This document shows, piece after piece, positions 1-44,747 of a stretch of DNA of 64,000 bases. Where the stretch lies: NCBI GenBank assembly GCA_950097015.1, contig CATNEN010000038.1, positions 6,014,001 through 6,078,000 on the forward strand, given 5' to 3'. Under the pieces are notes generated by a model. It saw only the letters and a program-made list of their open reading frames with translations. It searched no databases and was not told the origin of the DNA. Source of the DNA: Macrostomum hystrix (Eukaryota; Animalia; Platyhelminthes). A program made the translations under genes and the position numbers. Positions within the stretch are counted from its first letter, which is position 1. Each line of letters starts with the position of its first letter.

Positions 1-1579
1 GGAAGAAAATCTGAAATTTCGGCAAAGAAGTCTGGGCCATCATCATCATGTCCCCCAGGGGGGGGGACATCAGCAAAGTCACCCGCCCAAGCGCAATTCA
101 ACACGATAAGGCACTCAGGCAAATTATCCACCCCCATAGACAAGACCTCCCCCGGGTTGCTTGAACAAAAACAGTCAGATAAGAAAACTATTTTTTCAGA
201 CTTATCGGGCTGTTTGGGTCACTTGGGTTCTGTCAGTGTCGCGATGTCGCGGTGCCATCGAGGAGGCCACTTCTATTCATCGCTGACCCCTGAGCACACA
301 TTTGATGACATTCTCATCGCAAATCAGAGCACATTCTCCCTCTGTGACTGGTCTCACTAGCATGAATCGAACAGAACGACTCCAAGCCACTGTCCTTTAC
401 CCAAGCCTCAGTCGACTAGTGAATCCGACAGTCATCTTTTGAAGGAAAAGCAACTATGTATAATCCTAGAAGTCTTTGCCTCAGAGGATAAACATAGAGT
501 AACAATAGTGCTCCAAGGCCCTGCCAAATTTGGAAGCATCCAAAGGCACCAACTGCAGGCACAACATCCCCCCCAACTGCTCAAGTTCTTAAGTTCTTAG
601 GCCTCCGGCCTGCAGCGGAAAGCGTGGCAGCCTCTTTGAAGAGAGCAAAAACGGATTAGCATATTTTTATTAGGACTGTTGGAAGAAAAACGCTTGCGAA
701 ATCCCAATCTCCGCCCGCTCAGAATTCCCTTAGCTATTGCCGAGATCGGCCATCCTGTGAGAAATTCTCCAAGGCCTTAATTGGCTCCGATTTTGGGAGA
801 AGCTCGAGCACTTTTCTATTGGGAAATCTCTGCAAATTTTTGTACGCAAAGGTGGCACATGTGGCCAAGATTTTTATCGTCAGAGTTCCGTGGACGTTCG
901 AGTTTATTTCGATACTACGAGGAAAGGGAGAAAGGGAGAAAGCGATGGCACTTTCTGATATTCTGCAACGAATTATACACCTGACCACTTCATCCGCATT
1001 AGCTCATCCGATACTTTAGCCACAGCCTCAGCCATTCCAGTCGCTAAGCCGATTTCAGATTTCAAACTCCGGTGCAGTTCGCTGAACAGGCCACTCGCTG
1101 TCGACAAAAATCTGCGGAGACACTTTCAACTTTTTTACTTCTGTTCCAAGGAAAATTCCGACCAGATTTTTTTCTCTCTCCGCCTCATCCCCGCCCACCC
1201 TCCCCACCCCAACGAAGGGTTTGGAGGAAAACGCAATTTCCGCGCGGAGACAGCGTCAATCAGCGACATCCACCATCGAAGCGACGAGAAAATTTCCAGC
1301 GGACCAACTCGGCAGCCTCCGGGGGCTAACTGGGGGTACGTGGGGGCGACCGAGTGTTGACGGACCGCTGCCAACCGCGACCTCCCCAGTCGAATCATCC
1401 CTGATGCTGTCAGCTAGCTGACTGACCTCGATAATGAGGCCGTCGAGCAGTCCGAATGGAGTCGTCAGTTTGCCGCCAATCACTGCCTGGAATCAGGGAG
1501 CAGGGAGCAGAGGCGATGGAGCAGGGAAGAGAGGCTGGAAAACAGGACAAACTGAATTAGGTCTGCGCTGGGAAACAAC

Positions 1580-1782
<203 letters not shown>

Positions 1783-3037
1783 GTTAGTGTATGAGTGTTT
1801 AGATAGACCTTTCGTCCGTTTGAAAGCCTCCTTACGTGGACCCTCCGTTTTACGTGGACCCCTTAAGTGGACCACCATATAATTTTTTTCTGACAAGTTT
1901 TGTGTGGGTCTAGACCGACCCACAGTGTAGCTTAGAGCTCTGTGATACTGTGTTTGAAAGTATACTACTTAAAGTATTGCCGTTTGGAAGTTATTAGAAT
2001 TTAAGTTTAGATGGACCTTTTACGATGTCCACGTAAGCCACATTGCCCAGGTCCAGTTAAACCGAAAACATACGAAAAGAAACACACAAAGTGTATGTCG
2101 AATCTGTTTATAAGAAAATATTATCGCATGATAAATCCGATTAAAAAGTGCAGAAAAGTAAAGTCAGACATTTTTAACTTGTGAACATTTTAAAGTCGAG
2201 TTCGTTAGTGTTCAATAATTATGATGTGGGTCGTTGTCAGTGGTAAACTATAAATAGCATGCGTCTATTCGGCCCTTAATGGGAAACAAAAGCATCAAAA
2301 GGTACAGATATGTTAGCTTCATATAAATCAATCTGCATAATTTAACTACTGAAAGCGCAGATACCGACTTCTTGTTAAAGATTCTTGGTTAGATGTCTTG
2401 GTTAGAAATGATGTTTTATGAAATTATTCTGTCTTTAATACGTTGTTATCACTGCCACATAAACAAACAGACGCGAAATGTGCTCGAATTTTGACAACTT
2501 CACTCCAAAATTCTTTCGATTAGTTAAGAACCGAGGAACCAGCTATCCCAGACTATGCATTCAAGGAGCTGTACAGAAACGAAATGAAGGCATCTTCCTC
2601 AAACCTTTCTTTTTATTTACTACTGTACAGGGCCTCGAAACGCCACCCTAATGAAAAAAATTCAATTGGTTCGCAAGATTTCTAAGGAAATCTTTTTGGG
2701 GTCTAGCTAAACCACACACAGTTGACTTATCCACATGTGTTTTCATGGATGGCCCAAGACCTTGTTTTGCAACCCCTTTCTTTCCATCACCCTGTACATG
2801 CCTTCAACTTCCCACCCCAAACCACGCGATATGATTGGTCGAACGATATTCCGGGAAGAAAATTTTAGTAGGGGCAGGAGGTCCAGCTAAACCTTAGCTT
2901 ATTTGAAAAACCACAAAGAACAACCTCGGTAGTAAAGACTTTCACTCTTTCTATCGCATCAACTCGATACACATGATTAGCGTATTGACTACCTTCTGTG
3001 CGTAGGTTCCTGTACCTCGTACGATCATTCGTTTTCA

Positions 3038-3451
3038 ATGCGAAACCGTCGCTTGAAACAAAATTCTGGTACGTCAGACACGTGCCTTGTAGAAAAGATC
3101 ATAAAGTGCTCCAGGAAAAAGGTATTCGAAATATGGAAGAACTATTCAAGGTAAGTCTTCACTACCAAACTTTCAACTTTTACCGTAACTTTTGACCATT
3201 TGAAGAGTGCATGCGCATGCAAAATAAAATCGTATATACCCTAATACATTTTTAGCAAGTATAATACTTGGGAGCCAAAGACAAACATTTCTCAAGAAAT
3301 ACTGCAGTCGATGCATTCACAATGTGGTGAGTGCAGAAAATGTTACGGATATCTAAATTCGAACACTTGACTATTCTAACAAAAAGGCCCCAACTTTTTC
3401 ATTCTTGCAGAAACGTGCTTTCCACGTAAAAAACGAGAAACGCCCAAAAAT
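3038..3451 (+). CDS. Spliced chromodomain-encoding gene (possibly decaying) inside the TIR element
   Basis: Exons 3006-3150 (ATG 3038), 3256-3326 and 3411-3451, with GTAAGT/TTTTAG (branch CCCTAAT) and GTGAGT/TTGCAG sites. They join in frame to MRNRRLKQNSGTSDTCLVEKIIKCSRKKVFEIWKNYSSKYNTWEPKTNISQEILQSMHSQCETCFPRKKRETPKN, which carries the chromodomain signature VEKI...WKxY...NTWEP..NI. Confidence 0.7.
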
Positions 3452-3514
3452 GTAAGAATACGAGTCTATTGAATTTTAACCCCCTCTTTCACGCTAGTTA
3501 GAGATAGCTAAAAG

Positions 3515-4104
3515 TTTAGCTGGGGTCCAGCTAAACCCTCCCTACACAACTCGATATCAATGATGTATGTTAAAACTAGGCTCTTGCTAACAGCTAGTCC
3601 TGGGGTCCAGCTAAACCCTCCCTACACAACTCGATATCAATGATGTATGTTAAAACTAGGCTCTTGCTAACAGCTAGTCCTGGGGTCCAGCTAAACCCTC
3701 CCTACACAATTCGCTATCAATGGTGTATGTTAAAACTAGGCTCTTACTAACAACTGCTAGTCCTGGGGTCCAGCTAAACCCTCCCTACACAACTCGATAT
3801 CAATGATGTATGTTAAAACTAGGCTCTTGCTAACAGCTAGTCCTGGGGTCCAGCTAAACCCTCCCTACACAATTCGCTATCAATGGTGTATGTTAAAACT
3901 AGGTTCTTACTAACAACTGCTAGTCCTGGGGTCCAGCTAAACCCTCCCTACACAATTCGCTATCAATGGTGTATGTTAAAACTAGGTTCTTACTAACAAC
4001 TGCTAGTCCTGGGGTCCAGCTAAACCCTCCCTACACAATTCGCTATCAATGGTGTATGTTAAAACTAGGCTCTTACTAACAACTGCTAGTCCTGGGGTCC
4101 AGCT
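3515..4104. repeat. 80-83-bp tandem array 1 (~7 units) inside the TIR element
   Basis: TGGGGTCCAGCTAAACCCTCCCTACACAA.. recurs at 3521, 3601, 3681, 3764, 3844, 3927 and 4010; the copy at 4093 is partial. Confidence 0.95.
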
Positions 4105-6078
4105 TTATCCACTCTCACAACGGTGGTGCTTTCGCTTTTGTCCCGTTCTGTCAGCCTCACAAATACGCTTGTTTCACAGATGGCCAGCTGCCAGCAACGT
4201 CACTGTCCCCATGGCGGAGACCTCATCGCGAGAGTCCACTGGCTCACCGAATGTCGTTTGTGATGTTGAGCCGAGGGCTACGACTTCAACCCCGGCCAGT
4301 AACAATCGTCGAGCAAGTAAGGACGAAGCTTTAATGTCGATTCTTCCTTCGCCAGTCGAGCAAGCAAACCAGAGTTCAAACGTCAAGAAAAAGTGTTTTA
4401 ATCGTCCGACTCTAAATCCGACACCAGCTATGGAGCAGCGTAGTGATGCTGACCAAAGAGCAACAGTTGCCAGACGGGATAAACAGAGCTCGGATCAGAG
4501 TCCCGAAATAAGTGAATCTCTCGAATCCGAAGTCAAAAAGTTGCCGGCGGCTACAAAAATCCCTTCTGAATCTGATGCGGCCTAAAAATCGAATTCAGTT
4601 CGAGGTGCAGATACAGGCCCGGCATTTTCATCAGTAAGCTTTGCATCATGTACAAGTTTTTAAAACTCGGTGCAGTTGGTACACATAACAGAATCGGAAA
4701 GTAGCTCTTCACGGCCATACTAACAACTGCTAGTCCTGGGGTCCAGCTAAACCCTCCCTACACAATTCGCTATCAATGGTGTATTTTGGCAGTAGGCTCT
4801 TTCTATCAACTGCTAGTCCTGGGGTCCAGCTAAACCCTCCCTACACAACTCGCTATCAATGATGTATGTTAAAACTAGGCTATTGCTAACTGCTAGTCCT
4901 GGGGTCCAGCTAAACCCTCCCTACACAACTCGATATCAATCGTGTATTTTGGCAGTAGGCTCTTTCTATCAACTGCTAGTCCTGGGGTCCAGCTAAACCC
5001 TCCCTACACAACTCGATATCAATCGTGTATGTTAAAACTAGGCTCTTGCTAACTGCTAGACCTGGGGTCCAGCTAAACCCTCCCTACAAAACTCGATATC
5101 AATCGTGTATTTTGGCAGTAGGCTCTTTCTATCAACTGCTAGTCCTGGGATCCAGCTAAACCCTCCCTACACAACTCGATATCAATCGTGTATGTTAAAA
5201 CTAGGCTCTTGCTAACTGCTAGACCTGGGGTCCAGCTAAACCCTCCCTACACAACTCGATATCAATCGTGTATTTTGGCAGTAGGCTCTTTCTATCAACT
5301 GCTAGTCCTGGGGTCCAGATAAACCCTCCCTACACAATTCGCTATCAATGGTGTATGTTAAAACTAGGCTCTTGCTAACTGCTAGTCCTTGGGTCCAGCT
5401 AAACCCTCCCTACACAACTCGATATCAATCGTGTATTTTCGCATGTTATGGTGTATGTTAAAACTAGGCTCTTGCTAACAGCTAGTCCTGGGGTCCAGCT
5501 AAACCCTCCCTACACAATTCGCTATCAATGGTGTATGTTAAAACTAGGCTCTTACTAACAACTGCTAGTCCTGGGGTCCAGCTAAACCCTCCCTACACAA
5601 TTCGCTATCAATGGTGTATGTTAAAACTAGGCTCTTACTAACAACTGCTAGTCCTGGGGTCCAGCTTTATCCACTCTCACAACGGTGGTGCTTTCGCTTT
5701 TGTCCCGTTCTGTCAGCCTCACAAATACGCTTGTTTCACAGATGGCCAGCTGCCAGCAACGTCACTGTCCCCATGGCGGAGACCTCATCGCGAGAGTCCA
5801 CTGGCTCACCGAATGTCGTTTGTGATGTTGAGCCGAGGGCTACGACTTCAACCCCGGCCAGTAACAATCGTCGAGCAAGTAAGGACGAAGCTTTAATGTC
5901 GATTCTTCCTTCGCCAGTCGAGCAAGCAAACCAGAGTTCAAACGTCAAGAAAAAGTGTTTTAATCGTCCGACTCTAAATCCGACACCAGCTATGGAGCAG
6001 CGTAGTGATGCTGACCAAAGAGCAACAGTTGCCAGACGGGATAAACAGAGCTCGGATCAGAGTCCCGAAATAAGTGAA
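4049..6078. repeat. Internal direct duplication (offset 1562 bp) of array end plus a Ser/Thr/Pro-rich ORF segment
   Basis: ORFs 4049 and 5611 are identical up to ...QSPEISE. Confidence 0.93.
4717..5666. repeat. 80-83-bp tandem array 2 (~11 units, partly alternating two variants)
   Basis: Same unit as array 1. The TTTTGGCAGTAGG and GTTAAAACTAGG variants alternate, giving a 163-bp period. Confidence 0.95.
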
Positions 6079-6488
6079 GCTGAAGTGGGCTGAACAACTT
6101 AAAATTCGCCAAAATTTTATTGAAGCAAAAGCCTAGTCTTGTCAATGAAGCCGGCTTTGTAACCTTGCTATCATATCCTCATCGAATGCTTTGATTAATG
6201 AATAAATTGAGTGATCGTTCGGAATTATGTAAGAGTAATTGAGATCATTAACTTTGTCAGAACGTTAAACCATATTTTTTGGGTCCACCTAAACCGGTCT
6301 ACGTAAACACACGAGGCATTAACTCAATTTTCTTCTAATCAGCGCCTCCTCCAGTTTAAAAAGTAAACAATTCTAGTTCTTTAAATCGCATTTGACTTAA
6401 GATTTCATGTTTGGATTGAAAATTCGGAGGTCCAGGTAAGGCATTATCAAATGAACAGTCTACATAAACACACATACACTGGTAATAG

Positions 6489-6660
<172 letters not shown>

Positions 6661-7276
6661 CTTAATTCGGCCTGCAAACTACACAAACTAATAATTTTCG
6701 ATTCCCGGGTGAGTTTTCTGAAATCAGAGGCTGGTCTTCAATTACAGATGAGGCGGTATGCAGCTGAGGGTTAATCCTAACTCAGGGAAATGATGTCTTA
6801 TTCTGCCAGCATCGCCAGAGCACCGATTGGTAGGTGACGGAACGGAAGGACCGTCCCACAGAAACTTCACATCCGTCAGAAAAAACGTTGTCGCACGTTC
6901 GATCAACATCTCTGTCAGAGAGTACGAGTTAGCTCCTTCGTCAGTTAGGTTTACGAGCTAGCTATAGTTACTAGAGATTATCAACGTAGATTTCAATTTT
7001 TGCATTCAAAATTGAATTTTCCATGCGTGCTTGACTTGCGCATGACTCAAATCGTAAATCGAATGTTGTGTTGAACTGTCAAGTGCTTTAGAGTCTCTTT
7101 TTAATTTTTTTCTCAACTTTTTCATACCTGTCCTGAGTTTTCAGTTTGCTGAACATCGACGATAAGTGCTAGATTTGTTTCTCTAAGTAAGACAACTTGT
7201 TACCAGCTGAAGTATCAGCTAAGGCTGAAATTTTGGTAGGTGCTTTACCACTCCACGGACTAAGTAGCTGTACACA

Positions 7277-7599
7277 GGGGCTGAGTGGCAGAGCGGTTAA
7301 CGCGTTTGCCTCTCGCATCAAGGTCCCTGAGCTCGATTCCGCGGCGAGGCCACATTAAATTAGGGTGCAGCTGCGGAGAGAAGGCTTGCGGGCTTGTCGT
7401 TCAATTTACGCCCTTGAGGGCCAACCTCCAAGGCACAGTGAGAGTGTACACACTGCCTGACTGCCTGCCATGGCAGGTGTACACACCTGTGAGCTTGTGC
7501 CTGCACAAATGGGCAGAATTGCCTCTTCGCTGGCTCCGGGTCCAGTGTCACCAAATAATATGCCATCGCCCGCAGCCCTCAAGCAATTCTTATTATTAG
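7277..7599 (+). mobile_element. tRNA-derived SINE, full length
   Basis: Pol III A box TGGCAGAGCGG, B-box-like GCTCGATTCC, (TTA)n tail, candidate TSD AGCTGTACA (7266-7274 / 7608-7616). Homologous copies occur elsewhere in the window. Confidence 0.85.
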
Positions 7600-10256: not shown

Positions 10257-10840
10257 AGCATGAATAATGAAGGGGTAGCACAAATTATCGAAGGGGAAGC
10301 ATGAATAATGAAGGGGTAGCACAAATTATCGATGAGGAAGCATGAATAATGAAGGGGTAGCACAAATTATCGATGGGGAAGCATGAATAATGAAGGGGTA
10401 GCACAAATTATCGATGGGGAAGCATGAATAATGAAGGGGTAGCACAAATTATCGATGGGGAAGCATGAATAATGAAGGGGTAGCACAAATTATCGAAGGG
10501 GAAGCATGAATAATGAAGGGGTAGCACAAATTATCGAAGGGGAAGCATGAATAATGAAGGGGTAGCATAAATTATCGATGAGGAAGCATGAATAATGAAG
10601 GGGTAGCACAAATTATCGATGAGGAAGCATGAATAATGAAGGGGTAGCACAAATTATCGATGGGGAAGCATGAATAATGAAGGGGTAGCACAAATTATCG
10701 ATGGGGAAGCATGAATAATGAAGGGGTAGCACAAATTATCGATGGGGAAGCATGAATAATGAAGGGGTAGCACAAATTATCGATTGGGTAGCATGAATAA
10801 TGAAGGGGTAGCACAAATTATCGATGGGGTAGCATGAATA
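10257..10840. repeat. 41-bp (20+21) dimeric minisatellite
   Basis: GCATGAATAATGAAGGGGTA-GCACAAATTATCGATGGGGAA, about 14 copies. Confidence 0.95.
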
Positions 10841-11202
10841 ATTATAGGGGTTGTATAATTTTTCAAGCGAAAAGTTCGCATTTTCATGGGGAAGCATCAA
10901 TTAACGAGGCAGTAATATAAATTATTTAGGGGTATAATAAATAATTGAGAATAAGTATAATTTATCGAGATGGAAGCATGAATTAATGGAGGTAAACTTT
11001 CAGTTATTTAGGCGAACCATGATGTAGCATGGGAAAAGCATGAATTATCAAGGTCGAAGCATAAATTATCGATTGTAAAACATGACTTATCGATAGGGTA
11101 GCATGAATCGTCAAGGGCGGAGCATGAGTTATCGATGGCAAGCATGAATTATTGACAAAATTGCATGATTTGTCGAGACGGCTGAATAAATTATAGAGGG
11201 GG

Positions 11203-14200
11203 TAGCATGAATTAACGAGGGGAAGCATGAATTAACGAGGGGAAGCATGAATTAACGAGGGGAAGCATGAATTAACGAGGGGAAGCATGAATTAACGAGG
11301 GGTAGCATGAATTACCGAGGGAAAGCATGAATTAACGAGGGGTAGCATGAATTAACGAGGGGAAGCATGAATTAACGAGGAGAAGCATGAATTAACGAGG
11401 GGTAGCATGAATTACCGAGGGAAAGCATGAATTAACGAGGGAAAGCATGAATTAACGAGGGAAAGCATGAATTAACGAGGGAAAGCATGAATTAACGAGG
11501 GGTAGCATGAATTACCGAGAGAAAGCATGAATTAACGAGGGGAAGCATGAATTAACGAGGGGAAGCATGAATTACCGAGGGAAAGCATGAATTAACGAGG
11601 GAAGCATGAATTAACGAGGAGAAGCATGAATTAACGAGGGGAAGCATGAATTAACGAGGAGAAGCATGAATTAACGAGGGGAAGCATGAATTAACGAGGA
11701 GAAGCATGAATTAACGAGAAGAAGCATGAATTAACGAGGGAAAGCATGAATTACCGAGGGAAAGCATGAGTTAACGAAGGAAAGCATGAATTAACGAGGA
11801 GAAGCATGAATTAACGAGAAGAAGCATGAATTAACGAGGGAAAGCATGAATTACCGAGGGAAAGCATGAATTAACGAGGGAAAGCATGAATTACCGAGGG
11901 AAAGCATGAATTAACGAGGGGTAGCATGAATTACCGAGGGAAAGCATGAATTACCGAGGGAAAGCATGAATTAACGAGGGGAAGCATGAATTAACGAGGG
12001 GAAGCATGAATTACCGAGGGAAAGCATGAATTAACGAGGGGAAGCATGAATTAACGAGGAGAAGCATGAATTAACGAGGGGAAGCATGAATTAACGAGGA
12101 GAAGCATGAATTAACGAGGGGAAGCATGAATTAACGAGGAGAAGCATGAATTAACGAGAAGAAGCATGAATTAACGAGGGAAAGCATGAGTTAACGAGGG
12201 AAAGCATGAATTAACGAGGGAAAGCATGAATTAACGAGGGGTAGCATGAATTACCGAGGGAAAGCATGAATTATCGAAGGGAAGCATGAATTAACGCGGG
12301 AAAGCATGAGTTAACGAGGGGAAGCATGAATTACCGAGGAGAAGCATGAGTTAACGAGGGAAAGCATGAGTTAACGAGGGAAAGCATGAATTATCGAAGG
12401 GAAGCATGAATTAACGCGGGAAAGCATGAGTTAACGAGGGGAAGCATGAATTACCGAGGAGAAGCATGAGTTAACGAGGGAAAGCATGAATTAACGAGGG
12501 GAAGCATGAATTAACGAGGGGTAGCATGAATTACCGAGGGAAAGCATGAATTAACGAGGGGAAGCATGAATTAACGAGGGAAAGCATGAATTACCGAGGG
12601 GAAGCATGAATTAACGAGGGGAAGCATGAATTACCGAGGAGAAGCATGAGTTAACGAGGGAAAGCATGAATTACCGAGGGAAAGCATGAGTTAACGAGGG
12701 GAAGCATGAATTACCGAGGAGAAGCATGAGTTAACGAGGGAAAGCATGAGTTAACGAGGGGAAGCATGAATTAACGAGGGGAAGCATGAATTAACGAGGG
12801 GTAGCATGAATTACCGAGGGAAAGCATGAATTAACGAGGAGAAGCATGAATTAACGAGGAGAAGCATGAATTAACGAGGGGAAGCATGAATTAACGAGGA
12901 GAAGCATGAATTAACGAGAAGAAGCATGAATTAACGAGGGAAAGCATGAGTTAACGAGGGAAAGCATGAATTAACGAGGGGAAGCATGAATTAACGAGGG
13001 GAAGCATGAATTACCGAGGAGAAGCATGAATTACCGAGGAGAAGCATGAGTTAACGAGGGAAAGCATGAGTTAACGAGGGAAAGCATGAATTAACGAGGG
13101 GAAGCATGAATTAACGAGGGGAAGCATGAATTACCGAGGAGAAGCATGAGTTAACGAGGGAAAGCATGAATTAACGAGGGGAAGCATGAATTACCGAGGA
13201 GAAGCATGAATTACCGAGGAGAAGCATGAGTTAACGAGGGAAAGCATGAGTTAACGAGGGAAAGCATGAATTACCGAGGAGAAGCATGAGTTAACGAGGG
13301 GAAGCATGAATTACCGAGGAGAAGCATGAGTTAACGAGGGGAAGCATGAATTACCGAGGAGAAGCATGAGTTAACGAGGGGAAGCATGAATTACCGAGGA
13401 GAAGCATGAGTTAACGAGGGGAAGCATGAGTTAACGAGGGAAAGCATGAATTAACGAGGGGAAGCATGAATTACCGAGGGAAAGCATGAATTAACGAGGA
13501 GAAGCATGAGTTAACGAGGGAAAGCATGAATTACCGAGGAGAAGCATGAGTTAACGAGGGGAAGCATGAATTACCGAGGAGAAGCATGAGTTAACGAGGG
13601 GAAGCATGAATTACCGAGGAGAAGCATGAGTTAACGAGGGGAAGCATGAATTACCGAGGAGAAGCATGAGTTAACGAGGGGAAGCATGAGTTAACGAGGG
13701 AAAGCATGAATTAACGAGGGGAAGCATGAATTACCGAGGGAAAGCATGAGTTAACGAGGGGAAGCATGAATTACCGAGGAGAAGCATGAGTTAACGAGGG
13801 GAAGCATGAATTACCGAGGAGAAGCATGAGTTAACGAGGGAAAGCATGAATTAACGAGGGGAAGCATGAATTACCGAGGGAAAGCATGAGTTAACGAGGG
13901 AAAGCATGAGTTAACGAGGGAAAGCATGAATTACCGAGGAGAAGCATGAGTTAACGAGGGGAAGCATGAATTACCGAGGAGAAGCATGAGTTAACGAGGG
14001 GAAGCATGAATTACCGAGGAGAAGCATGAGTTAACGAGGGGAAGCATGAATTACCGAGGAGAAGCATGAGTTAACGAGGGAAAGCATGAATTAACGAGGG
14101 GAAGCATGAATTACCGAGGGAAAGCATGAGTTAACGAGGGAAAGCATGAGTTAACGAGGGGAAGCATGAATTAACGAGGGGAAGCATGAATTACCGAGGG

Positions 14201-17200
14201 AAAGCATGAGTTAACGAGGGGAAGCATGAATTACCGAGGAGAAGCATGAGTTAACGAGGGGAAGCATGAATTACCGAGGGAAAGCATGAATTAACGAGGG
14301 GAAGCATGAATTACCGAGGGAAAGCATGAATTACCGAGGAGAAGCATGAATTACCGAGGGAAAGCATGAGTTAACGAGGGAAAGCATGAATTACCGAGGA
14401 GAAGCATGAATTACCGAGGGAAAGCATGAATTAACGAGGGGAAGCATGAATTAACGAGGGGAAGCATGAATTACCGAGGGAAAGCATGAATTACCGAGGA
14501 GAAGCATGAGTTAACGAGGGGAAGCATGAATTACCGAGGAGAAGCATGAGTTAACGAGGGAAAGCATGAATTACCGAGGAGAAGCATGAATTAACGAGGG
14601 AAAGCATGAATTAACGAGGAGAAGCATGAGTTAACGAGGGGAAGCATGAATTACCGAGGAGAAGCATGAATTAACGAGGGGAAGCATGAATTAACGAGGG
14701 GAAGCATGAATTACCGAGGGAAAGCATGAATTAACGAGGGGAAGCATGAGTTAACGAGGGGAAGCATGAATTACCGAGGAGAAGCATGAGTTAACGAGGG
14801 AAAGCATGAGTTAACGAGGGGAAGCATGAATTAACGAGGGGAAGCATGAATTAACGAGGGGTAGCATGAATTACCGAGGGAAAGCATGAATTAACGAGGA
14901 GAAGCATGAATTAACGAGGAGAAGCATGAATTAACGAGGGGAAGCATGAATTAACGAGGAGAAGCATGAATTAACGAGAAGAAGCATGAATTAACGAGGG
15001 AAAGCATGAGTTAACGAGGGAAAGCATGAATTAACAAGGGGAAGCATGAATTAACGAGGGGAAGCATGAATTACCGAGGAGAAGCATGAATTACCGAGGA
15101 GAAGCATGAGTTAACGAGGGAAAGCATGAGTTAACGAGGGAAAGCATGAATTAACGAGGGGAAGCATGAATTAACGAGGGGAAGCATGAATTACCGAGGA
15201 GAAGCATGAGTTAACGAGGGAAAGCATGAATTAACGAGGGGAAGCATGAATTACCGAGGAGAAGCATGAATTACCGAGGAGAAGCATGAGTTAACGAGGG
15301 AAAGCATGAGTTAACGAGGGAAAGCATGAATTGCCGAGGGAAAGCATGAATTAACGAGGAGAAGCATGAGTTAACGAGGGAAAGCATGAATTACCGAGGA
15401 GAAGCATGAGTTAACGAGGGGAAGCATGAATTACCGAGGAGAAGCATGAGTTAACGAGGGGAAGCATGAATTACCGAGGAGAAGCATGAGTTAACGAGGG
15501 GAAGCATGAATTACCGAGGAGAAGCATGAGTTAACGAGGGGAAGCATGAGTTAACGAGGGAAAGCATGAATTAACGAGGGGAAGCATGAATTACCGAGGG
15601 AAAGCATGAGTTAACGAGGGGAAGCATGAATTACCGAGGAGAAGCATGAGTTAACGAGGGGAAGCATGAATTACCGAGGAGAAGCATGAGTTAACGAGGG
15701 AAAGCATGAATTAACGAGGGGAAGCATGAATTACCGAGGGAAAGCATGAGTTAACGAGGGAAAGCATGAATTACCGAGGAGAAGCATGAGTTAACGAGGG
15801 GAAGCATGAATTACCGAGGAGAAGCATGAGTTAACGAGGGGAAGCATGAGTTAACGAGGGAAAGCATGAATTAACGAGGGGAAGCATGAATTACCGAGGG
15901 AAAGCATGAGTTAACGAGGGGAAGCATGAATTACCGAGGAGAAGCATGAGTTAACGAGGGGAAGCATGAATTACCGAGGAGAAGCATGAGTTAACGAGGG
16001 AAAGCATGAATTAACGAGGGGAAGCATGAATTACCGAGGGAAAGCATGAGTTAACGAGGGAAAGCATGAGTTAACGAGGGGAAGCATGAATTAACGAGGG
16101 GAAGCATGAATTACCGAGGGAAAGCATGAGTTAACGAGGGGAAGCATGAATTACCGAGGAGAAGCATGAGTTAACGAGGGGAAGCATGAATTACCGAGGG
16201 AAAGCATGAATTAACGAGGGGAAGCATGAATTACCGAGGGAAAGCATGAATTACCGAGGAGAAGCATGAATTACCGAGGGAAAGCATGAGTTAACGAGGG
16301 AAAGCATGAATTACCGAGGAGAAGCATGAATTACCGAGGGAAAGCATGAATTAACGAGGGGAAGCATGAATTAACGAGGGGAAGCATGAATTACCGAGGG
16401 AAAGCATGAATTACCGAGGAGAAGCATGAGTTAACGAGGGGAAGCATGAATTACCGAGGAGAAGCATGAGTTAACGAGGGAAAGCATGAATTACCGAGGA
16501 GAAGCATGAATTAACGAGGGAAAGCATGAATTAACGAGGAGAAGCATGAGTTAACGAGGGGAAGCATGAATTACCGAGGAGAAGCATGAATTAACGAGGG
16601 GAAGCATGAATTAACGAGGGGAAGCATGAATTACCGAGGGAAAGCATGAATTAACGAGGGGAAGCATGAGTTAACGAGGGGAAGCATGAATTACCGAGGA
16701 GAAGCATGAGTTAACGAGGGAAAGCATGAATTAACGAGGGGAAGCATGAATTAACGAGGGGAAGCATGAATTACCGAGGGAAAGCATGAGTTAACGAGGG
16801 GAAGCATGAATTACCGAGGAGAAGCATGAGTTAACGAGGGAAAGCATGAATTACCGAGGGAAAGCATGAATTACCGAGGGAAAGCATGAGTTAACGAGGG
16901 AAAGCATGAATTAACGAGGGGAAGCATGAATTAACGAGGGGAAGCATGAATTACCGAGGGGAAGCATGAATTAACGAGGGGAAGCATGAATTAACGAGGA
17001 GAAGCATGAATTAACGAGGGGAAGCATGAATTAACGAGGAGAAGCATGAATTAACGAGAAGAAGCATGAATTAACGAGGGGAAGCATGAATTAACGAGGA
17101 GAAGCATGAATTAACGAGAAGAAGCATGAATTAACGAGGGGAAGCATGAATTACCGAGGGAAAGCATGAGTTAACGAGGGAAAGCATGAATTATCGAAGG

Positions 17201-17860
17201 GAAAGCATGAATTAACGGGGGAAAGCATGAATTAACGGGGGAAAGCATGAATTAACGGGGGAAAGCATGAATTAACGAGGGAAAGCATGAATTAACGGGG
17301 GAAAGCATGAATTAACGAGGGAAAGCATGAATTAACGAGGGAAAGCATGAGTTAACGAGGGAAAGCATGAATTAACGGGGGAAAGCATGAATTAACGAGG
17401 GGAAGCATGAATTAACGAGGGGAAGCATGAATTAACGAGGAGAAGCATGAATTAACGAGGGAAAGCATGAGTTAACGAGGGAAAGCATGAATTAACGGGG
17501 GAAAGCATGAATTAACGAGGGGAAGCATGAATTAACGAAGGGAAGCATGAATTAACGAGGAGAAGCATGAATTAACGGGGGAAAGCATGAATTAACGAGG
17601 GGTAGCATGAATTAACGGGGAGAAGCATGAATTAACGAGGAGAAGCATGAATTACCGAAGGGAAGCATGAATTAACGAGGGGAAGCATGAATTAACGGGG
17701 GAAAGCATGAATTATCGAGGGGGAGTCATGCATTATTTAGGGGAAAGATGAATTATTAATGAAAAAGCATGAATTAACGAGAAGAAGCATGAATTAACGA
17801 GGGGAAGCATGAATTAACGAGGAGAAGCATGAATTAACGAGGGAAAGCATGAATTATCGA
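11203..17860. repeat. 20-bp satellite GAAGCATGAATTAACGAGGG (~330 units) with higher-order duplication
   Basis: Directly visible; variant order in ~12.8-14.8 kb is repeated at ~14.8-16.7 kb. Confidence 0.98.
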
Positions 17861-18582
17861 GGGGCAGTCATGCATTTTTTAGGGGAAAGATGAATTATTA
17901 ATGAAAAGGCATGAATTATCGAGGTGGAAGCAAAATTTATTAAGGGGGTACAATGATTTATCAACCGGATTGCATAAATTATTAAGGGGTTTGCATTATT
18001 TATCGAAAGGGTCAGGGTGTATTATCGAGGGGTTGCATGATATATTGAGTAATTTTCTATCATCAACAGTTAAAAACGTAAGAACGGTTCGTAAAAGTTT
18101 TTTATTTTTATTTTTTAGGTTTCTGTTAATAGTAAGAGCTATTAATTATCTACTGCCAAAGCAAATATTTTTTGCTTAATTGCCCTTCTCGCTCTTAGAA
18201 AATAAAAAAAATATTTTTTGAGCGCTGCAGCAAGTTTTTTTCGATACAAAACTGAGTAAAGAATTTTCCGCCAGCGTTTTTAGATTCAAAAATATGAGAA
18301 AAGACTTTGAGCAAAGCTAATAGCCTATAGTTCATTTTTAATTGTAACGTTTTTTTCAAGCATTCTTGCAGGCGATGTTCCATAGGATTTAAAAATGTTA
18401 TATTCCAAACTAACAACTATTTTTCAGCATAGCTGCAAGCATAATCAGATTCAGAACTAGAAAAAAAATTATTGAAAGGATTGCATGAGATTTCCAGGAG
18501 AAAGAATGAGATTTTTTAGGTAATCGCATAGATGCTTTCAGGGGATTTTTTAAGACGATAGAATGATTTCTTAAAGAGAGTA

Positions 18583-19262
18583 GCATGACTTATCGAGGGG
18601 GAGCATGAACTATCAAGGGGAAAGCATGACTTATCGAGGGGGAGCATGAACTATCAAGGGGAAAGCATGACTTATCGAGGGGAAGCATGAACTATCAAGG
18701 GGAAAGCATGACTTATCGAGGGGGAGCATGAACTATCAAGGGGAAAGCATGACTTATCGAGGGGAAGCATGAACTATCAAGGGGAAAGCATGACTTATCG
18801 AGGGGGAGCATGAACTATCAAGGGGAAAGCATGACTTATCGAGGGGAAGCATGAACTATCAAGGGGAAAGCATGACTTATCGAGGGGAAGCATGAACTAT
18901 CAAGGGGAAAGCATGACTTATCGAGGGGAAGCATGAACTATCAAGGGGAAAGCATGACTTATCGAGGGGAAGCATGAACTATCAAGGGGAAAGCATGACT
19001 TATCGAGGGGGAGCATGAACTATCAAGGGGAAAGCATGACTTATCGAGGGGAAGCATGAACTATCAAGGGGAAAGCATGACTTATCGAGGGGAAGCATGA
19101 ACTATCAAGGGGAAAGCATGACTTATCGAGGGGAAGCATGAACTATCAAGGGGAAAGCATGACTTATCGAGGGGAAGCATGAACTATCAAGGGGAAAGCA
19201 TGACTTATCGAGGGGAAGCATGAACTATCAAGGGGAAAGCATGACTTATCGAGGGGGAGCAT
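18583..19262. repeat. 41-bp dimeric minisatellite, second type
   Basis: AGCATGACTTATCGAGGGG(G/A)-AGCATGAACTATCAAGGGGAA, about 16 copies. Confidence 0.95.
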
Positions 19263-19974
19263 GAGGGGGAGCAAAAATATTTGCTTCCCTGTTCGATATG
19301 ATGTTTCGTTTTCAAAATAACAATGCTTTTAGCTAGGATTATAATATCTTTTCCTAATTTTTTCATATAATATCGATTGCAGCATCGCTCGAAACACCTT
19401 TCTTTTGTTTTGAAAAGGGGACTTAGGGGACTTAGTTTTAGGAAAAGGGGACTTAGTTTTTAGCTGTGCTCAACATTATTTCTTCTCCTCGAAGTTCTGA
19501 ATCTGATAACGCTTGCAGCTATGCTCAGAAATGTTTTCATTTTGCTTAGTCCTGGTGTCGAAAAACACTAGCTGCTACACTGTTGATGATAGAAGATTAG
19601 AAGAAAAAGAAGCAGTTGAAGCTGATGCTGAAATTGGAGCTGCGTTCGGCGAAATAATAAAAGAACTTTACTTCGGAGCTAAATGAAAAGAAAGCGGCAC
19701 AATGATCGACGTCGAGACAAGGTTTGACAATATAAAGGCTGCAGTTTTCAGCAACAGAAAGGAGTAGGAGAGGTCTCGCTAGCATTGAGCATCATAAAAG
19801 CCCAATCTACTATGTTCGTTTTACTCATTCAAATCAAATCACCCAATCAAAATTGCTAAACTTCGGTCTCTGATGTACTGATCGTACCCGAGAAACGTTT
19901 CTAGTAGTTTATCGTTCAACTCTATCATTGGGGTCATTGCACTTCCACTAGTCGAGTTCTCGCTCTCGCACAAA

Positions 19975-23799: not shown

Positions 23800-26700
23800 T
23801 TATTCCTCTTTGCTGGGAACGGCTTTCTTGCCATTCGCCATCGGGCGAATCCGCAGAGCCATGTCCTTGCGCACCTCCTGGTACAGGTCCGGGTTGCTCT
23901 TGTTCTCATTGGTGATACCTCTGGCGTGCGGCCCGAGCTGGTCCTTGGTGACAAAGTCCCACAACACGCGCAGTAGGCTGGTGTGGTGCGGCAGGGGGTC
24001 GTAGTACTCGGCAGCGATGCGGCGAACCTCCGGGAGACGGCTGAGGGGCGGAGAAGTCGACATGAGCCGGGAGCTCAGAAAGTGATCGAATGAGCGCTTC
24101 CTGTCTGACAAGTTTTGCTAACAGAGGGATCAAGAGAGTGCTCGAAGATTGATTATTTGAGACCGAGTAGTAATGACCAAGGCGATCAGAGACTGACGAA
24201 CCGAACGCTCAGAGACTGAAGAACCGAACGCTCAAAGACTGAAAAACTGAGTTCTCAGAGAGTGATTAACAGAGTGCTCTTTGAGTGAGCGCTAGATTGT
24301 CAGTTGCCTTCTGAAACTGTCAACAGTAAAAAAACAATTCACCTGTACGGAATGTAAGGAAAGTCGTGATGCTCAATGTGGTAGCCAACATTGAACAGCA
24401 GAGCATTCATCGGCCCGTAGTAGCTGTGCGTGGCCTGGCCGCCGGAGAACAGGTAGTGCTCAGAGATGAAGTGGCCGGCCATTGGATGAATGCCGAAGCC
24501 GAACAGGGACCCGATGACCAAGTAGCAAAGCGGCTTCACTCCAAACGCCCTGTAGACAGCCAGGTCGAAGGCCAGGCAGCAGGCGAAGTTAAATAGCTCC
24601 CAGGGCGTTGTGGGCTTCGGAGATTTTATAAACGGCCGCAGGGCGTGGATGATCGGATGCGCGCACAGCCACAGAAGTTTCGTGGCCGGCCGGCGGAACA
24701 GGCGAGCCTCCACACTAGTCGGAATGTCGACATCGTTCTGGTCGTGGCCCAGCCAGCGGTGATGGTCCGTGTGGTACTTCTTGTAGCTGATGGCCAGCGG
24801 AATGGCGATGGGCAAGTTGCACAGAATTGACAGCAGCCGATTGGCCCAAGGACGCTTGTGACCGAAGGCTAGGTTGTGGCCTGTAGGTGGGTGGGGTTGG
24901 GTTACGTGTCAGAAGTGGCGATTTTTGGTTATCCATGGTGACCTTAGTTTCTGCGACATTAATTAATGTCTTGACAGCAAAGTTATTTAATGTCATTCAT
25001 GTCATAATGTCAATGTTGGCCTAGGTTCCACTATTATTTGTCGCTAGTTCGCGCGCACCAATGTCTCAAGCACGACTATTCCATTGTTAGAGTCTCACAC
25101 CTGCCTTGCCAATGAGGTGGTCGGTATGTCTGGCCCCAGGGTCCACCAAAGGTTCAGCAAACTCAACTAGCTCTCTACGATTCTAAAGTGAATTAAATTT
25201 GTACGAGAGTACCACCTCTTATCTACAGTTAGGTCGTTAGGACAAGTTTAAATGGGCGGTTTTCAAATGACTTACGGCGTTAGTTCATTCTTTTAACTCC
25301 TTTAGTCACGAGGATCAGCTGATGCTGTCAATGAGAACTGATGCTGTCAATGAGGTCTGATGCTGTCACTGAGATCTGATGCTGTCAATTAGATCAGATT
25401 GTTTTCAAAGCGTGTTGTTTTTTTCTTGCCTAAACCAATTCATCTCGCACAGTGAAACCGGTGAAGAGATATTCTCTCTAACCCAGCCCATCAATTCAAT
25501 TTTGTTTATCTTTGCTCATTCTTCAAAACAGCCACCCAGGTGTCTGTTATACTCAACTCGCTGCTATTGTGCCACAAGTAATTAATTACAAAAGCCTTAC
25601 AAATGAAGGTTGAATTAGAAAAACTGCACCCGCTGAATCACGTGAGCCAGATTGTGAATGACTGAGCAAGGTCTTTTGTTGTCTTGCATTCTGTTCGCAA
25701 GTCCAACCCGCCCTTCTAAACAGCGAAGTCAAAACTGGATTTAGTCGGACCCAACTCACAAATGTCTTTACCTAGTTCTGGTAGCTCATAGAAGCTCGGA
25801 ATGTGAAAATTTCGAGCTTATGACTGGAAAATTACATGTTAAGTCATTTTCTTACTTTTTCTTTTAGCAAAACACTCAAAAGCTTCACCTAAAATACACA
25901 GAATTTCTTCAGCTTTCTAATAAAGTAAATAAGTTTGAAATTGGATAGACGAAACGACATTTATCTACGTGCTTAAAATATTAACTAGGGCACCTTAGTA
26001 TAAACTATAAACTTGCGTACTTACGCTAGCGGACTAAAATACTCGTACTAAAGTGCTAGAGTACTAGCGTGAGTACTAGAGTACTAGCGTACAAGAGTAC
26101 TAGCGTACTATAGTACTAGCGTACTAGAGTACTAGCGTACTAGAGTACTAGCGTACTAGCGTACTAGAGTACTAGCGTACAAGAGTACTAGCGTACTAGA
26201 GTAATAGCGTACTGGAGTACTAGCGTGAGAACTATAGAGTACTAGCTTACTAGAGTACTAGCGTAATAAAGTAATAACGTACTAAAGTACTAGCGTACTA
26301 AAGTACTAGCGTACTAAAGTACTAGCGTACTAAAGTACTAGCGTACTAAAGTACTAGCGTACTAAAGTACTAGCGTACTAAAGTACTAGCGTACTAAAGT
26401 ACTAGCGTACTAAAGTACTAGCGTACTAAAGTACTAGCGTACTAAAGTACTAGCGTACTAAAGTACTAGAGTACTATAGTACTAGCGTACTAAAGTACTA
26501 GCGTACTAAAGTACTAGCGTACTAAAGTACTAGCGTACTAAAGTACTAGCGTACTAAAGTACTAGCGTACTAAAGTACTAGCGTACTAAAGTACTAGCGT
26601 ACTATAGTACTAGCGTACTAAAGTACTAGCGTACTAAAGTACTAGCGTACTAAAGTACTAGCGTACTAAAGTACTAGCGTACTAAAGTACAAGCGTACTA

Positions 26701-27146
26701 AAGTACTTGCGACTAGCTTGTAGTTGCAAACTAGCTTGTAAATTACTCATTCATTTTAACGCGTCCGTAGCAGCCTCAGTGGCAGCCTCACCAATTTCGT
26801 GAATCGCCGAGGCCAGGCTGTGATTGAGGGTGGCTCCGACCACGTAGGCTAGGAACACCAGCCAGCCCCAGGACAGGTCCGTGGCGGCGATTACCTGGCA
26901 CATTGCCAGCTGTAGCAGAACCTCCGCGCTGACCACCAGGGCAATGCGAGGATCATAGCCCATCAGCTTCTTGATCTGGGGATATTTGGCTAGGATCTCC
27001 TTGCGCCGCGTGACATGCGGCTCCTCGTTGTATTCCCACATGTCAGAGTCCAGCTCGAGCTTCATGCTCAACTTCAGCGCGTTGAAAAAGGACCAACTTA
27101 AACTGCCGCCACTGCCGCCGCCGCCGCTGCTGCTGCTGCTGCTCAT
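23800..27146 (-). CDS. DEGS1: Sphingolipid delta-4 desaturase (DES1/DEGS family), 3 exons, 377 aa
   Basis: Exons 27146-26792, 24880-24343 and 24040-23800 join in frame via GT-AG introns. N-terminal EPHVTRRKEILAKYPQIKKLMG, His boxes HEIGH, HTDHH and HIEHH, and HPMAGHFISEHY, SYYGPMN, DFPYIP, RLPEVRRIAAEYYD motifs. Confidence 0.93.
25318..25398. repeat. Short 4-unit copy of the 19-bp satellite in DEGS intron 1
   Basis: CTGATGCTGTCAATGAGAA-type units, the same as in the 28.7-38.5 kb array. Confidence 0.85.
26040..26708. repeat. 16-bp minisatellite ACTAAAGTACTAGCGT in DEGS intron 1
   Basis: Directly visible. Confidence 0.96.
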
Positions 27147-37600: not shown

Positions 37601-38470
37601 GCTGTCACTGAGAACTGATGCTGTCAATGAGATCTGATGCTGTCACTGAGAACTGATGCTGTCAGTGAGATCTGTTGCTGTCATTGAGAACTGATGCTGT
37701 CACTGAGAACTGATGCTGTCACTGAGAACTGATGCTGTCACTGAGAACTGATGCTGTCACTGAAAACTGATGCTGTCAGTGAGATCTGTTGCTGTCACTG
37801 AGATCTGTTGCTGTCACTGAGTTCTGATGCTGTCACTGAGATCTGTTGCTGTCAATGAGATCTGATGCTGTCACTGAGATCTGATGCTGTCACTGAGATC
37901 TGATGCTGTCAATGAGATCTGATGCTGTCACTGAGATCTGATGCTGTCAATGAGATCTGATGCTGTTACTGAGATCTGATGCTGTCATTGAGATCTGATG
38001 CTGTCACTGAGATCTGATGCTGTCACTGAGATCTGATGCTGTTACTGAGATCTGATGCTGTCAATGAGATCTGATGCTGTTACTGAGATCTGATGCTGTC
38101 AATGAGATCTGATGCTGTTACTGAGATCTGATGCTGTCAATGAGATCTGTTGCTGTCAATGAGATCTGATGCTGTCACTGAGATCTGTTGCTGTCAATGA
38201 GATCTGATGCTGTCACTGAGATCTGATGCTGTCACTGAGATCTGATGCTGTCAATGAGATCTGATGCTGTCACTGAGATCTGATGCTGTCAATGAGATCT
38301 GATGCTGTTACTGAGATCTGATGCTGTCAATGAGATCTGATGCTGTTACTGAGATCTGATGCTGTCAATGAGATCTGATGCTGTTACTGAGATCTGATGC
38401 TGTCAATGAGATCTGATGCTGTTACTGAGATCTGATGCTGTCAATGAGAACTGATGCTTTCAGTGAGATC
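28659..38470. repeat. 19-bp satellite TGAGA(A/T)CTG(A/T)TGCTGTCAN, ~9.8 kb (~515 units), with higher-order repeats
   Basis: Directly visible; rare variant GTGGCT at 32031, 34235 and 36971 (offsets 116 and 144 units). Confidence 0.98.
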
Positions 38471-43404: not shown

Positions 43405-44747
43405 GACTCAGGGTTCAGGGGAAAGCAAGAAGCTTCAGGACTCAGGGTTCAGGGGAAAGCAAGAGGCTTCAGGACTCAGGGTTCAGGGGAAAGCAAGAAG
43501 CTTCAGGACTCAGGGGAGAGGGGGTGAGAAGCTTCAGGGCTCAGGGGAGAGTGAGCGAGAAGCTTCAGGACTCAAGGGAGAGTGGGCGAGAAGCTTCAGG
43601 GCTCAGGGGAGAGGGGGCGAGAATTCAGGGCTCAGGGGAGAGGGGGCAAAAAGCTTCAGGGCTCAGGGGAGAGGTGGCGAGAAGCTTCAGGGCTCAGGGG
43701 AGAGGTGGCGAGAAGCTTCAGGGCTCAGGGGAGAGGGGGCGAGAATTCAGGGCTCAGGGGAGAGGGGGCGAGAAGCTTCTGGGCTCAGGGGAGAGGGGGC
43801 GAGAAGCTTCAGGGCTCAGGGGAGAGGGGGTGAGAAGCTTCAGGGCTCAGGGGAGAGGGCAAGAAGCTTCAGGGCTCAGGGGAGAGGGGGCGAGAAGCTT
43901 CAGGACTCAGGGGAGATGTGGCGAGAAGCTTCAGGGCTCAGGGGAGAGGGGGCGAGAAGCTTCAGGGCTCAGGGGAGAGTGAGCGAGAAGCTTCAGGACT
44001 CAAGGGAGAGTGGGCGAGAAGCTTCAGGGCTCAGGGGAGAGGGGGCGAGAAGCTTCAGGGCTCAGGGGAGAGTGAGCGAGAAGCTTCAGGACTCAAGGGA
44101 GAGTGGGCGAGAAGCTTCAAGGCTCAGGGGAGAGGTGGCGAGAAGCTTCAGGGCTCAGGGGAGAGGGGGCGAGAAGCTTCAGGGCTCAGGGGAGAGGGGG
44201 CGAGAAGCTTCAGGGCTCAGGGGAGAGGTGGCGAGAAGCTTCAGGGCTCAGGGGAGATGTGGCGAGAAGCTTCAGGGCTCAGGGGAGAGGGGGCGAGAAG
44301 CTTCAGGACTCAAGGGAGAGTGGGCGAGAAGCTTCAGGGCTCAGGGGAGAGGTGGCGAGAAGCTTCAGGGCTCAGGGGAGAGTGGGCGAGAAGCTTCAGG
44401 GCTCAGGGGAGAGGGGGCGAGAAGCTTCAGGGCTCAGGGGAGAGGGGGCGAGAAGCTTCAGGGCTCAGGGGAGAGGTGGCGAGAAGCTTCAGGGCTCAGG
44501 GGAGATGTGGCGAGAAGCTTCAGGGCTCAGGGGAGAGGGGGCGAGAAGCTTCAGGACTCAAGGGAGAGTGGGCGAGAAGCTTCAGGGCTCAGGGGAGAGG
44601 TGGCGAGAAGCTTCAGGGCTCAGGGGAGAGTGGGCGAGAAGCTTCAGGGCTCAGGGGAGAGGGGGCGAGAAGCTTCAGGGCTCAGGGGAGAGGGGGCGAG
44701 AAGCTTCAGGGCTCAGAGGAGAGGGGGCGAGAAGCTTCAGGGCTCAG
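43405..44747. repeat. 31-bp G-rich minisatellite GAGAAGCTTCAGGGCTCAGGGGAGAGGGGGC
   Basis: Directly visible upstream of the Rho start codon; explains the overlapping ORFs in all three + frames. Confidence 0.95.

Follow-up and report, generated by a model that had tools for sequence, protein, structure and literature searches.

The 64-kb stretch of the Macrostomum hystrix genome analysed here (hereafter, the window) contains a perfect (GTCT)n microsatellite that is split by about 4.7 kb of complex DNA, at positions 1783-6488. Our results make it highly probable that this insert belongs to a low-copy family of Crypton-type tyrosine recombinase (YR) elements integrating site-specifically into GTCT-type microsatellites, as a non-autonomous member that has undergone internal deletion. 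The family would thus belong to a kind of transposon that is known but thinly documented, the window copy being one of its defective derivatives. This reading is carried by the anatomy of the insert, its homology to longer relatives, the YR fold and catalytic residues of the protein encoded by these relatives, the independence of the insertions, and the regularity of their orientation and junctions. Further, three small exons encoding a chromodomain-like peptide in the window correspond to the N-terminus of the recombinase, which has a close homologue in Macrostomum lignano (protein P0001).

Ends, copies and target sites

Direct reading of positions 1500-6800, together with Tandem Repeats Finder (TRF), placed (GTCT)51 at 1579-1782, left of the insert, and (GTCT)43 at 6489-6660, right of it. 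The insert starts with GT-TAGTGTATGAGTGTTTAGATAGAC and ends with GTCTACATAAACACACATACACTG-GTAATAG; this last heptamer is counted as element sequence because it recurs at three short-type right ends, with one A/T difference in the copy on contig C12. An ungapped 28-nt inverted repeat (1786-1813 / 6453-6480) is 82% complementary, and when the first and last 75 nt are aligned with gaps, the terminal inverted repeat (TIR) extends to about 63 nt, with a score of 50 versus 10.3 +/- 4.0 (maximum 27) in 500 shuffles. Imperfect TIRs of about 60 bp, a (GTCT)n tract on each side and GTGT at both junctions (read at 1781-1784 and 6488-6491) had been noted in a preliminary description of this DNA, made from the sequence alone, and all of them were confirmed. 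The features of the insert and its target array are the following:

1579-1782, + strand: left half of the target microsatellite, (GTCT)51 (TRF, sequence)
1780-1782, + strand: left copy of the junction direct repeat, the last TGT of (GTCT)51 (sequence)
1783-1847, + strand: left terminus, GT and then TAGTGTATG..., left arm of the imperfect TIR of about 63 nt (TIR alignments, junction comparison)
1786-1813, + strand: ungapped core of the TIR, left arm (inverted-repeat scan)
1848-2893, + strand: left subterminal region, with dispersed GGTCCA(G/C)CTAAACC-like motifs at 2004, 2050, 2700 and 2880 (motif scan, alignment to the C15 copy)
3038-3150, + strand: predicted chromodomain exon 1, ATG at 3038, ...LVEKIIKCSRKKVFEIWKNYS, with two nucleotides of a split codon at its end and a GT donor (BLASTP to P0001, intron position)
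3256-3326, + strand: predicted chromodomain exon 2, SKYNTWEPKTNISQEILQSMHSQC (Pfam Chromo, BLASTP to P0001)
3411-3451, + strand: predicted exon 3, (E)TCFPRKKRETPKN, then a GTAAGA donor; homologous to EKCFPPNEQ of P0001 (sequence, tblastn)
3520-4104, + strand: 83-bp tandem array 1, 7.2 units, with GGTCCAGCTAAACC in each unit (TRF, motif scan)
4105-4585, + strand: linker module copy 1, open frame 4049-4585, Ser/Thr-rich (open reading frame list, alignment)
4720-5666, + strand: 83/163-bp tandem array 2, about 11 units, same 14-bp motif as array 1 (TRF, motif scan)
5667-6093, + strand: linker module copy 2, open frame 5611-6093, duplicate of 4105-4560 (sequence)
6282-6295, + strand: right subterminal copy of the 14-bp motif, GGTCCACCTAAACC (motif scan)
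6419-6488, + strand: right terminus, TIR arm ending in ...CATACACTG (6481), then GTAATAG (6482-6488) (TIR alignments, copy comparison)
6489-6660, + strand: right half of the target microsatellite, (GTCT)43 (TRF, sequence)
6489-6491, + strand: right copy of the junction direct repeat, the first TGT of (GTCT)43 (sequence)

Genome-wide pattern searches returned these ends in only five copies in the 220 Mb genome, each located at a GTCT-type or short GTCT-like site and each holding the YR gene or pieces of it:

Window copy, contig C38, window 1783-6488, + strand: about 4.7 kb, short type
C12 copy, C12:598758-602648: 3.9 kb, 98-99% identical to the window copy over the unique part
C38:32.2 Mb copy, C38:32.197 Mb: right end about 85-90% identical to the window copy; its left end was sought and not found, the copy being truncated or rearranged
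C15 copy, C15:152324-160141: 7.8 kb, long type
C7 copy, C7:about 5.016-5.0226 Mb: broken, long type; its right end was sought and not found, the copy being truncated or rearranged

GTCT-type arrays hold the window, C12 and C38:32.2 Mb copies (3/5), and short GTCT-like sites the other two, the C7 copy abutting (GTCT)3 and the C15 copy being placed between CTGTATGTGT and GTATGTCTG. All five have the same orientation on the GTCT strand, and (GTCT) runs of at least 4 units occupy 52 of 118,002 bp in unrelated loci. The single orientation of the copies and the type of their sites support the earlier suggestion of a transposon that targets microsatellites. The window, C12 and C38:32.2 Mb copies are independent insertions, because their outer flanks are unrelated; a segmental duplication of these three copies was considered and rejected on the same observation.

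The junctions of these copies are highly regular. In element orientation, the left junction reads ...(GTCT)n GTC-TGT-GTTAGTG in the window, ...GTCTGTCTGTTC-TGT-GTTAGTG in C12, ...GGCC(GTCT)3G-TGT-TAGTG in C7 and ...TTTACCTGTA-TGT-GTTAGTG in C15, and the right junction reads ...CACTG-GTAAT(A/T)G-TGT-CTGTCTG... in the window, C12 and C38:32.2 Mb copies and ...CACTG-GTA-TGT-CTGCGC in C15. A direct repeat is found on both sides, namely TGT in the window and C12, and GTATGT in C15. When the element is deleted together with one TGT, the window array becomes a perfect (GTCT)n again, and in C12 the exact (GTCT)3GTTCT higher-order period of the right flank is recovered. The left-flank 8-mers of four copies (GTCTGTGT, TTCTGTGT, GTATGTGT and GTCTGTGT) are nearly identical, and near-constant flanks at every copy are expected from site-specific recombination, not from a staggered-cut target-site duplication.

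These flanks also bear on a different origin, a hAT-like or Academ-like cut-and-paste DDE element that would be moved by a transposase encoded elsewhere, with the recombinase-chromodomain gene as its cargo. Ac-type hAT ends start with TAG or CAG, and the TIR starts TAG/CAG resemble them; the 8 bp flanking the C15 copy, 8 bp being the length of the hAT duplication, match at 7 of 8 positions (GTATGTGT / GTATGTCT). However, the flanking 8-mers match at only 4/8 positions in the window and 3/8 in C12, and the near identity of the left 8-mers over four independent insertions, with GTAAT(A/T)G at three right ends, argues against random duplications. Moreover, the genome-wide searches found the element ends only on the five copies with the YR gene or pieces of it, the long copies are devoid of DDE and hAT domains, and a sister family with unrelated ends, described below, shows the same microsatellite bracketing. 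We thus regard a DDE element with such cargo as very improbable. The Academ mechanism with a 4-bp target-site duplication that the preliminary description had proposed is likewise not upheld, since the long copies encode a YR and no DDE enzyme, and the flanks are near-constant and match poorly in two of the three complete copies.

The recombinase and its N-terminal chromodomain

The 7.8-kb C15 copy contains an intact frame of 711 amino acids (aa), whose best database match is the M. lignano protein BOX15_Mlig016835g4 (P0001, 1184 aa), 93% identical over 711 residues. P0001 displays an N-terminal Chromo domain, two zinc fingers and a YR core. A longer copy encoding the mobility enzyme had been envisaged in the preliminary description, and the C15 copy is such a copy, its enzyme being a YR and not a DDE transposase; the open reading frame list and a Pfam scan revealed no reverse transcriptase (RT), DDE, hAT domain or other enzyme in this long copy.

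Alignments of 38 and of 45 further homologues showed that the two zinc fingers (C2H2, C2HC) are conserved, and that NRRRxGE, a GK(R) hairpin, T-x-LRK, LGH and a Tyr, located nine residues downstream of the LGH His, are invariant or near-invariant in both sets. The residue set is R-K-(H to T)-R-H-Y, a tyrosine recombinase pattern. Foldseek on an AlphaFold2 (AF2) model of the recombinase (predicted local distance difference test, pLDDT, 71.9) gave XerH as the best match (probability 0.99), and also Cre, XerA and lambda Int. With VIA-align, the 21 best rows were all YRs, with Z scores of 10.6 over 264 residues for XerH, 9.7-8.6 for Cre, 8.4 for integron integrase and 7.9 for lambda Int, while outside the YRs topoisomerase IB reached 7.2 and unrelated helical folds 6.5 or less. 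The assignment rests on the motifs, the fold and the few homologues matching Phage_integrase (PF00589; 3/38 in the first alignment and 1/45 in the second), because direct sequence searches gave no recombinase: Pfam returned no match for the 711-aa protein at E up to 1, and phmmer and a 38-sequence profile against PDB sequences returned only weak, non-significant zinc-finger-like or low-complexity matches. Neither DUF3504 (CryptonA) nor DUF3435 (Starship captain) was matched by any of the 84 family proteins scanned.

The superfamily of this recombinase comprises 5,289 cluster representatives at E <=1e-3 and 807 at <=1e-30, with cnidarian homologues in Acropora and Paramuricea. N-terminal extensions vary among 83 homologues scanned (SET 14, FHA 3, and BRCT, OTU and kinase 1 each), and Chromo was found only in the Macrostomum protein. 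Homologues P0010, P0019, P0023 and others, from fish, sea cucumber and oyster, bear an N-terminal SET domain, sometimes with FHA, and carry the annotation 'uncharacterized protein', as ordinary genes; they may be misannotated transposon genes or domesticated copies. Divergent recombinase pieces, 30-53% identical to the C15 protein and several of them with stop codons, were observed at C24:1278860-1288774, C39:13664270-13670324 and C25:3383313-3383936, with short (GTCT)5 and (AGAC)8 runs near the C25 fragment (L043).

The three small exons with consensus splice sites reported in the preliminary description were recovered in the window, with exact junctions at 3150/3256 and 3326/3411, GT-AG borders at all three exons, and translations matching the peptide given there. 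BLASTP aligned exon 1 to residues 3-33 of P0001 (45% identity, E 1e-6) and exon 2 to residues 37-57 (52% identity, E 6e-8). Exon 2 alone matches Pfam Chromo (PF00385) with 17.8 bits (E 0.0031; gathering cutoff 25.1 bits) and exon 1 alone has no Pfam match; P0001, which starts with MQKKKPQASRRFYVERIIKCTKKKLYIKWKGYSSNQNSWEPRSNIP..., matches Chromo over residues 14-47 with 29.2 bits (E 8.6e-7), above the 25.1-bit cutoff. Among solved structures, the P0001 chromodomain is nearest to that of HP1 (6asz, E 1.6e-4), followed by CBX2, CBX1/3/5 and SUV39H1. Furthermore, tblastn of P0001 detected the same three small exons in the C15 and C7 copies, with introns at the codon positions seen in the window. 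The chromodomain is therefore native to the element family and not a captured host exon, because the same exons constitute the N-terminus of the recombinase protein in the long copies. The preliminary description had allowed for a captured or a native chromatin-reader gene; the exons and intron positions shared with the long copies and M. lignano uphold the latter, and capture of a host CBX gene by the window copy was rejected. The 'hidden' chromodomain gene is thus explained as transposon-derived, to be masked in annotation instead of being called as a CBX-like host gene.

The residues of the aromatic cage (Y24, W45 and Y48 in HP1) are Cys, Trp and Tyr in the window and C12 copies, and Phe, Trp and Tyr in the long copies and P0001, so that the three-residue aromatic cage is present in the latter and incomplete in the former. 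The Cys and a loop short by about four residues had both been noticed in the window before; alignment to HP1 via P0001 indicates that the short loop is a trait of the whole family, and the Cys is confined to the two short copies.

Of the family's features, the window copy retains its two ends, the motifs, the chromodomain exons and two copies of the linker exon, but no zinc-finger or recombinase sequence; it is therefore non-autonomous and would have to be moved in trans. Truncated transposases act as regulators or competitors in other systems, and in the same manner the chromodomain-only product of the short element might be expressed and act as a trans regulator or competitor of the family, or be under domestication. 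Neither short copy shows damage to the ATG, to any of the three exons or to a splice site, and exon 2 scores 17.8 bits in the window versus 15.2 bits in the functional-looking long copy. On the other hand, the window and C12 copies differ at 21/1735 positions, with the same rate in exon bases (3/225) as elsewhere (18/1510), and two of the three exon changes alter an amino acid, one of them turning the Pro of NTWEP into Leu in C12; in this tiny sample, the chromodomain exons of the short copies show no sign of purifying selection. Besides, Cys replaces the first cage aromatic in these copies, their downstream frame is discontinuous, and the product is predicted from sequence. A regulatory or domesticated role thus appears unlikely.

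Internal motifs, a sister family and the proposed mechanism

The insert comprises a unique left part (1848-3519) followed by two tandem arrays and by two copies of a segment of about 450 bp with an open frame. Positions 4105-4383 are 89% identical to the segment ahead of the recombinase-coding region in the C38:32.2 Mb relative. The 64-kb window contains 23 matches to the 14-bp motif GGTCCAGCTAAACC with no more than 2 mismatches (0.29 expected), all within 2004-6295 and 22/23 on the sense strand of the element; there is one per 83-bp unit, besides those in both subterminal regions. In the C15 copy, 13 matches (0.03 expected) lie in the subterminal regions and in the introns before the repeated linker exons. 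Alignable DNA between the C15 copy and the window copy is confined to ~330 bp at the left end (71%) and ~56 bp at the right end (82%), and the motif is conserved despite this divergence of roughly 30% in otherwise unalignable copies, which suggests that these are putative protein-binding (arm-type) sites. As a separate observation, the long copies contain a TIR-like TAGGATGATGTTTATGTAGACCC, preceded by GGTGTCTGTTGTTGTGGT, in the opposite orientation and about 1.07 kb inward of their left end (C15 copy, L011:7572-7600 (+); C7 copy, L012:9064 and L004:551); it may represent an internal pseudo-end or what is left of a nested insertion.

The genome also contains a sister family, whose recombinase shares 29% identity with the C15 protein (E 5e-51) and has no chromodomain according to Pfam. 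It consists of three copies of about 13 kb, 98-99% identical mutually (C7:~3622127-3635244, C33:~3354925-3365546 and C13:~896978-909159; L035-L040), with an intact 916-aa recombinase frame, internal tandem repeats of about 850 bp, and a perfect 14-bp inverted repeat, TGCGTCCAACACTG, whose arms lie some 90-110 bp away from either end. Each copy is located between (GT)n-type arrays, either pure GT, GTGTGA or GTGTGTGA; the variant differs between copies and is identical on both sides of each copy, a pattern that fits insertion into a pre-existing array and not array growth from the element ends.

Such growth would offer another account of the (GTCT)n arrays, which might have expanded from the GT-rich element termini (GTGTTAGTGTATG...) after insertion instead of being the target, and the C7 and C15 copies do adjoin only 1.5 to 3.5 GTCT-like units. 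However, in this family as in the sister family the array variants are copy-specific yet common to both sides (GTCT in the window, (GTCT)3GTTCT in C12), and removal of the element restores the array phase and the higher-order period. These findings argue for one pre-existing array that was split by insertion, and leave array growth with very little probability.

For a microsatellite-specific YR element, the following mechanism can be proposed, in which the excised circle, the position of the crossover and the functions of the motif and the chromodomain are inferred. Autonomous members encode a single protein from a predicted spliced gene, with an HP1-like chromodomain at the N-terminus followed by repeated linker exons rich in Ser and Thr, a pair of zinc fingers, the core-binding and catalytic domain of the YR, and a C-terminal helical domain. 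The recombinase would bind the inverted ends, and excision would give a circle with the TIRs opposed across a short GT-rich spacer, as in lox or FRT sites. The junction of the joined ends would read ...CATACACTG-GTA(ATAG)TGT-GTTAGTGTATG...; in a circle of the C15 type, the CACTG and TAGTG tips would be 8 bp apart (GTATGTGT), a lox/FRT geometry with the TIRs as inverted recombinase-binding arms. Strand exchange with a genomic GT(C/A)TGT core would flank the element with the same short repeat, from TGT up to GTATGT. The putative GGTCCA(G/C)CTAAACC motifs would probably serve as accessory binding sites, and the chromodomain would probably tether the recombinase to methylated-histone chromatin.

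Relation to known systems and surrounding sequences

The closest described kind is CryptonV, with which the family is compared by description only: a Repbase Report cited in PMC8869645 gives CryptonV as microsatellite-specific YR transposons. Both are YR-encoding DNA transposons inserting specifically into microsatellites, and they differ in that the family of the window has a flatworm host; its ~60-nt TIRs, GTCT target and N-terminal chromodomain are here set beside that short description of CryptonV only. The GTCT specificity, the TIRs and the native HP1-like chromodomain fusion are the new points. The classical Cryptons (CryptonF/S/A/I; Goodwin 2003; Kojima & Jurka 2011) are YR-only DNA transposons, as is the family described here, and are described with short terminal direct repeats reflecting target homology and without TIRs (PMC3212892, PMC13465315). 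They differ in using short unique target motifs, not microsatellites, for instance in the active CryptonF-1_cRei, which ends in CACCG and targets CAYCG (PMC9977147), and CryptonA has DUF3504, which the family of the window lacks. Several features of the Crypton type were found: the YR catalytic set in the long copies, with Thr as its first His, the YR gene being lost from the window copy; no RT, and only internal tandem arrays instead of terminal direct repeats of the DIRS/Ngaro kind (repeat scans of the window and C15 copies); and short terminal direct repeats that mirror the target, with flanks near-constant over copies.

Several observations weigh against the assignment to a site-specific, Crypton-type family. 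An imperfect TIR of about 63 nt is present, and classical Cryptons are described without TIRs (PMC3212892); here the TIR is treated as a variant feature within the Crypton type, since it would form the inverted binding sites of the recombination site. The spacer between CACTG and TAGTG is 8 bp in the C15 type versus 12 bp in the short type, which misfits a single lox-like geometry. In the enzyme, Thr takes the place of the first His in the canonical HxxR box, and pLDDT falls under 50 over residues 441-487, which contain R442, H468 and Y477. In the window chromodomain, the first cage position is Cys; the spliced three-exon model is predicted on homology, and exon 3, which ends in phase 0, would be joined through the obvious acceptor at 4179/4180 out of frame with the long downstream frame. 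Finally, the evidence for the family is limited to five genomic copies, and neither an excision circle nor an empty site nor an event of transposition was seen.

Other systems share part of this combination. The Starship captain Kirc of Enterprise is a YR with a zinc finger and a chromodomain in one protein (PMC8092012), though it is fungal, has DUF3435, which is lacking here, bears the chromodomain at its C-terminus and moves giant cargo-carrying elements. In the endogenous nimaviruses of crustaceans, a YR with a C2H2 zinc finger integrates into telomere repeats or microsatellites (PMC10871703); the YR and C2H2 steer these insertions to short tandem repeats, with distinct repeat niches taken by distinct integrase lineages. 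However, these are viral genomes of ~200-300 kb, with a YR family reported as unrelated to Cryptons (PMC10871703). The chromoviruses (Ty3/Gypsy) resemble the family in fusing a chromodomain to the integration enzyme of the element, presumably for chromatin targeting, and differ as long terminal repeat (LTR) retrotransposons with a DDE integrase and a C-terminal chromodomain, whereas the family of the window combines a YR and an N-terminal HP1-like chromodomain and has no RT. In the searchable literature, we found no description of a YR transposon from an animal that bears a chromodomain, nor of one that combines TIRs with a GTCT target. The earlier remark that no described family with this combination was known agrees with this search as far as animals are concerned, and is only partly true, as microsatellite-specific YRs (CryptonV) and a Starship chromodomain-YR are on record.

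Target-specific DNA transposons are rare in eukaryotes, and Crypton mechanics have barely been studied. The family provides a tractable case in a laboratory-model genus, with defined inverted ends, a four-base-repeat target and an apparently intact recombinase gene, and the sister family with another repeat target in the same genome makes the determinants of specificity mappable by comparison and swapping. Chromatin-reader or -writer domains have been fused repeatedly to this recombinase, in parallel to chromoviruses and fungal Starships. We tentatively entertain a wider reading, doubtful as it stands, in which animals would hold a very large, essentially uncharacterised superfamily of site-specific integrases, each lineage combining a short crossover core that fits one microsatellite unit (GTCT in this family, GT in the sister family) with an exchangeable N-terminal chromatin module (chromodomain in this family; SET, FHA or BRCT in others), the families within a genome partitioning microsatellite niches and the 14-bp motif arrays acting as arm-type sites for assembly of the recombination complex; if so, target choice would be read from DNA sequence together with chromatin state.

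Outside the element, a repeat of about 100-200 bp at 7298-7504, located 817-1023 bp past the right tip (6481), matches at 75-79% the DNA flanking the C7 and C12 copies (L050:478-685, L047:720-822), and probably represents a dispersed repeat unconnected with the element. Minisatellites with 15-41-bp units, in long arrays, account for about 40% of the window (10257-17932, 18582-19264, 26026-26715, 28660-38470, 38941-42091, 43496-44747, 46230-46892 and 51839-52594); a 20/40-bp unit fills 7.7 kb and a 19-bp unit 9.8 kb. The arrays are strongly strand-skewed, with a GC skew of +0.47 to +0.49 at 10-18 kb and of -0.95 at 40-42 kb.

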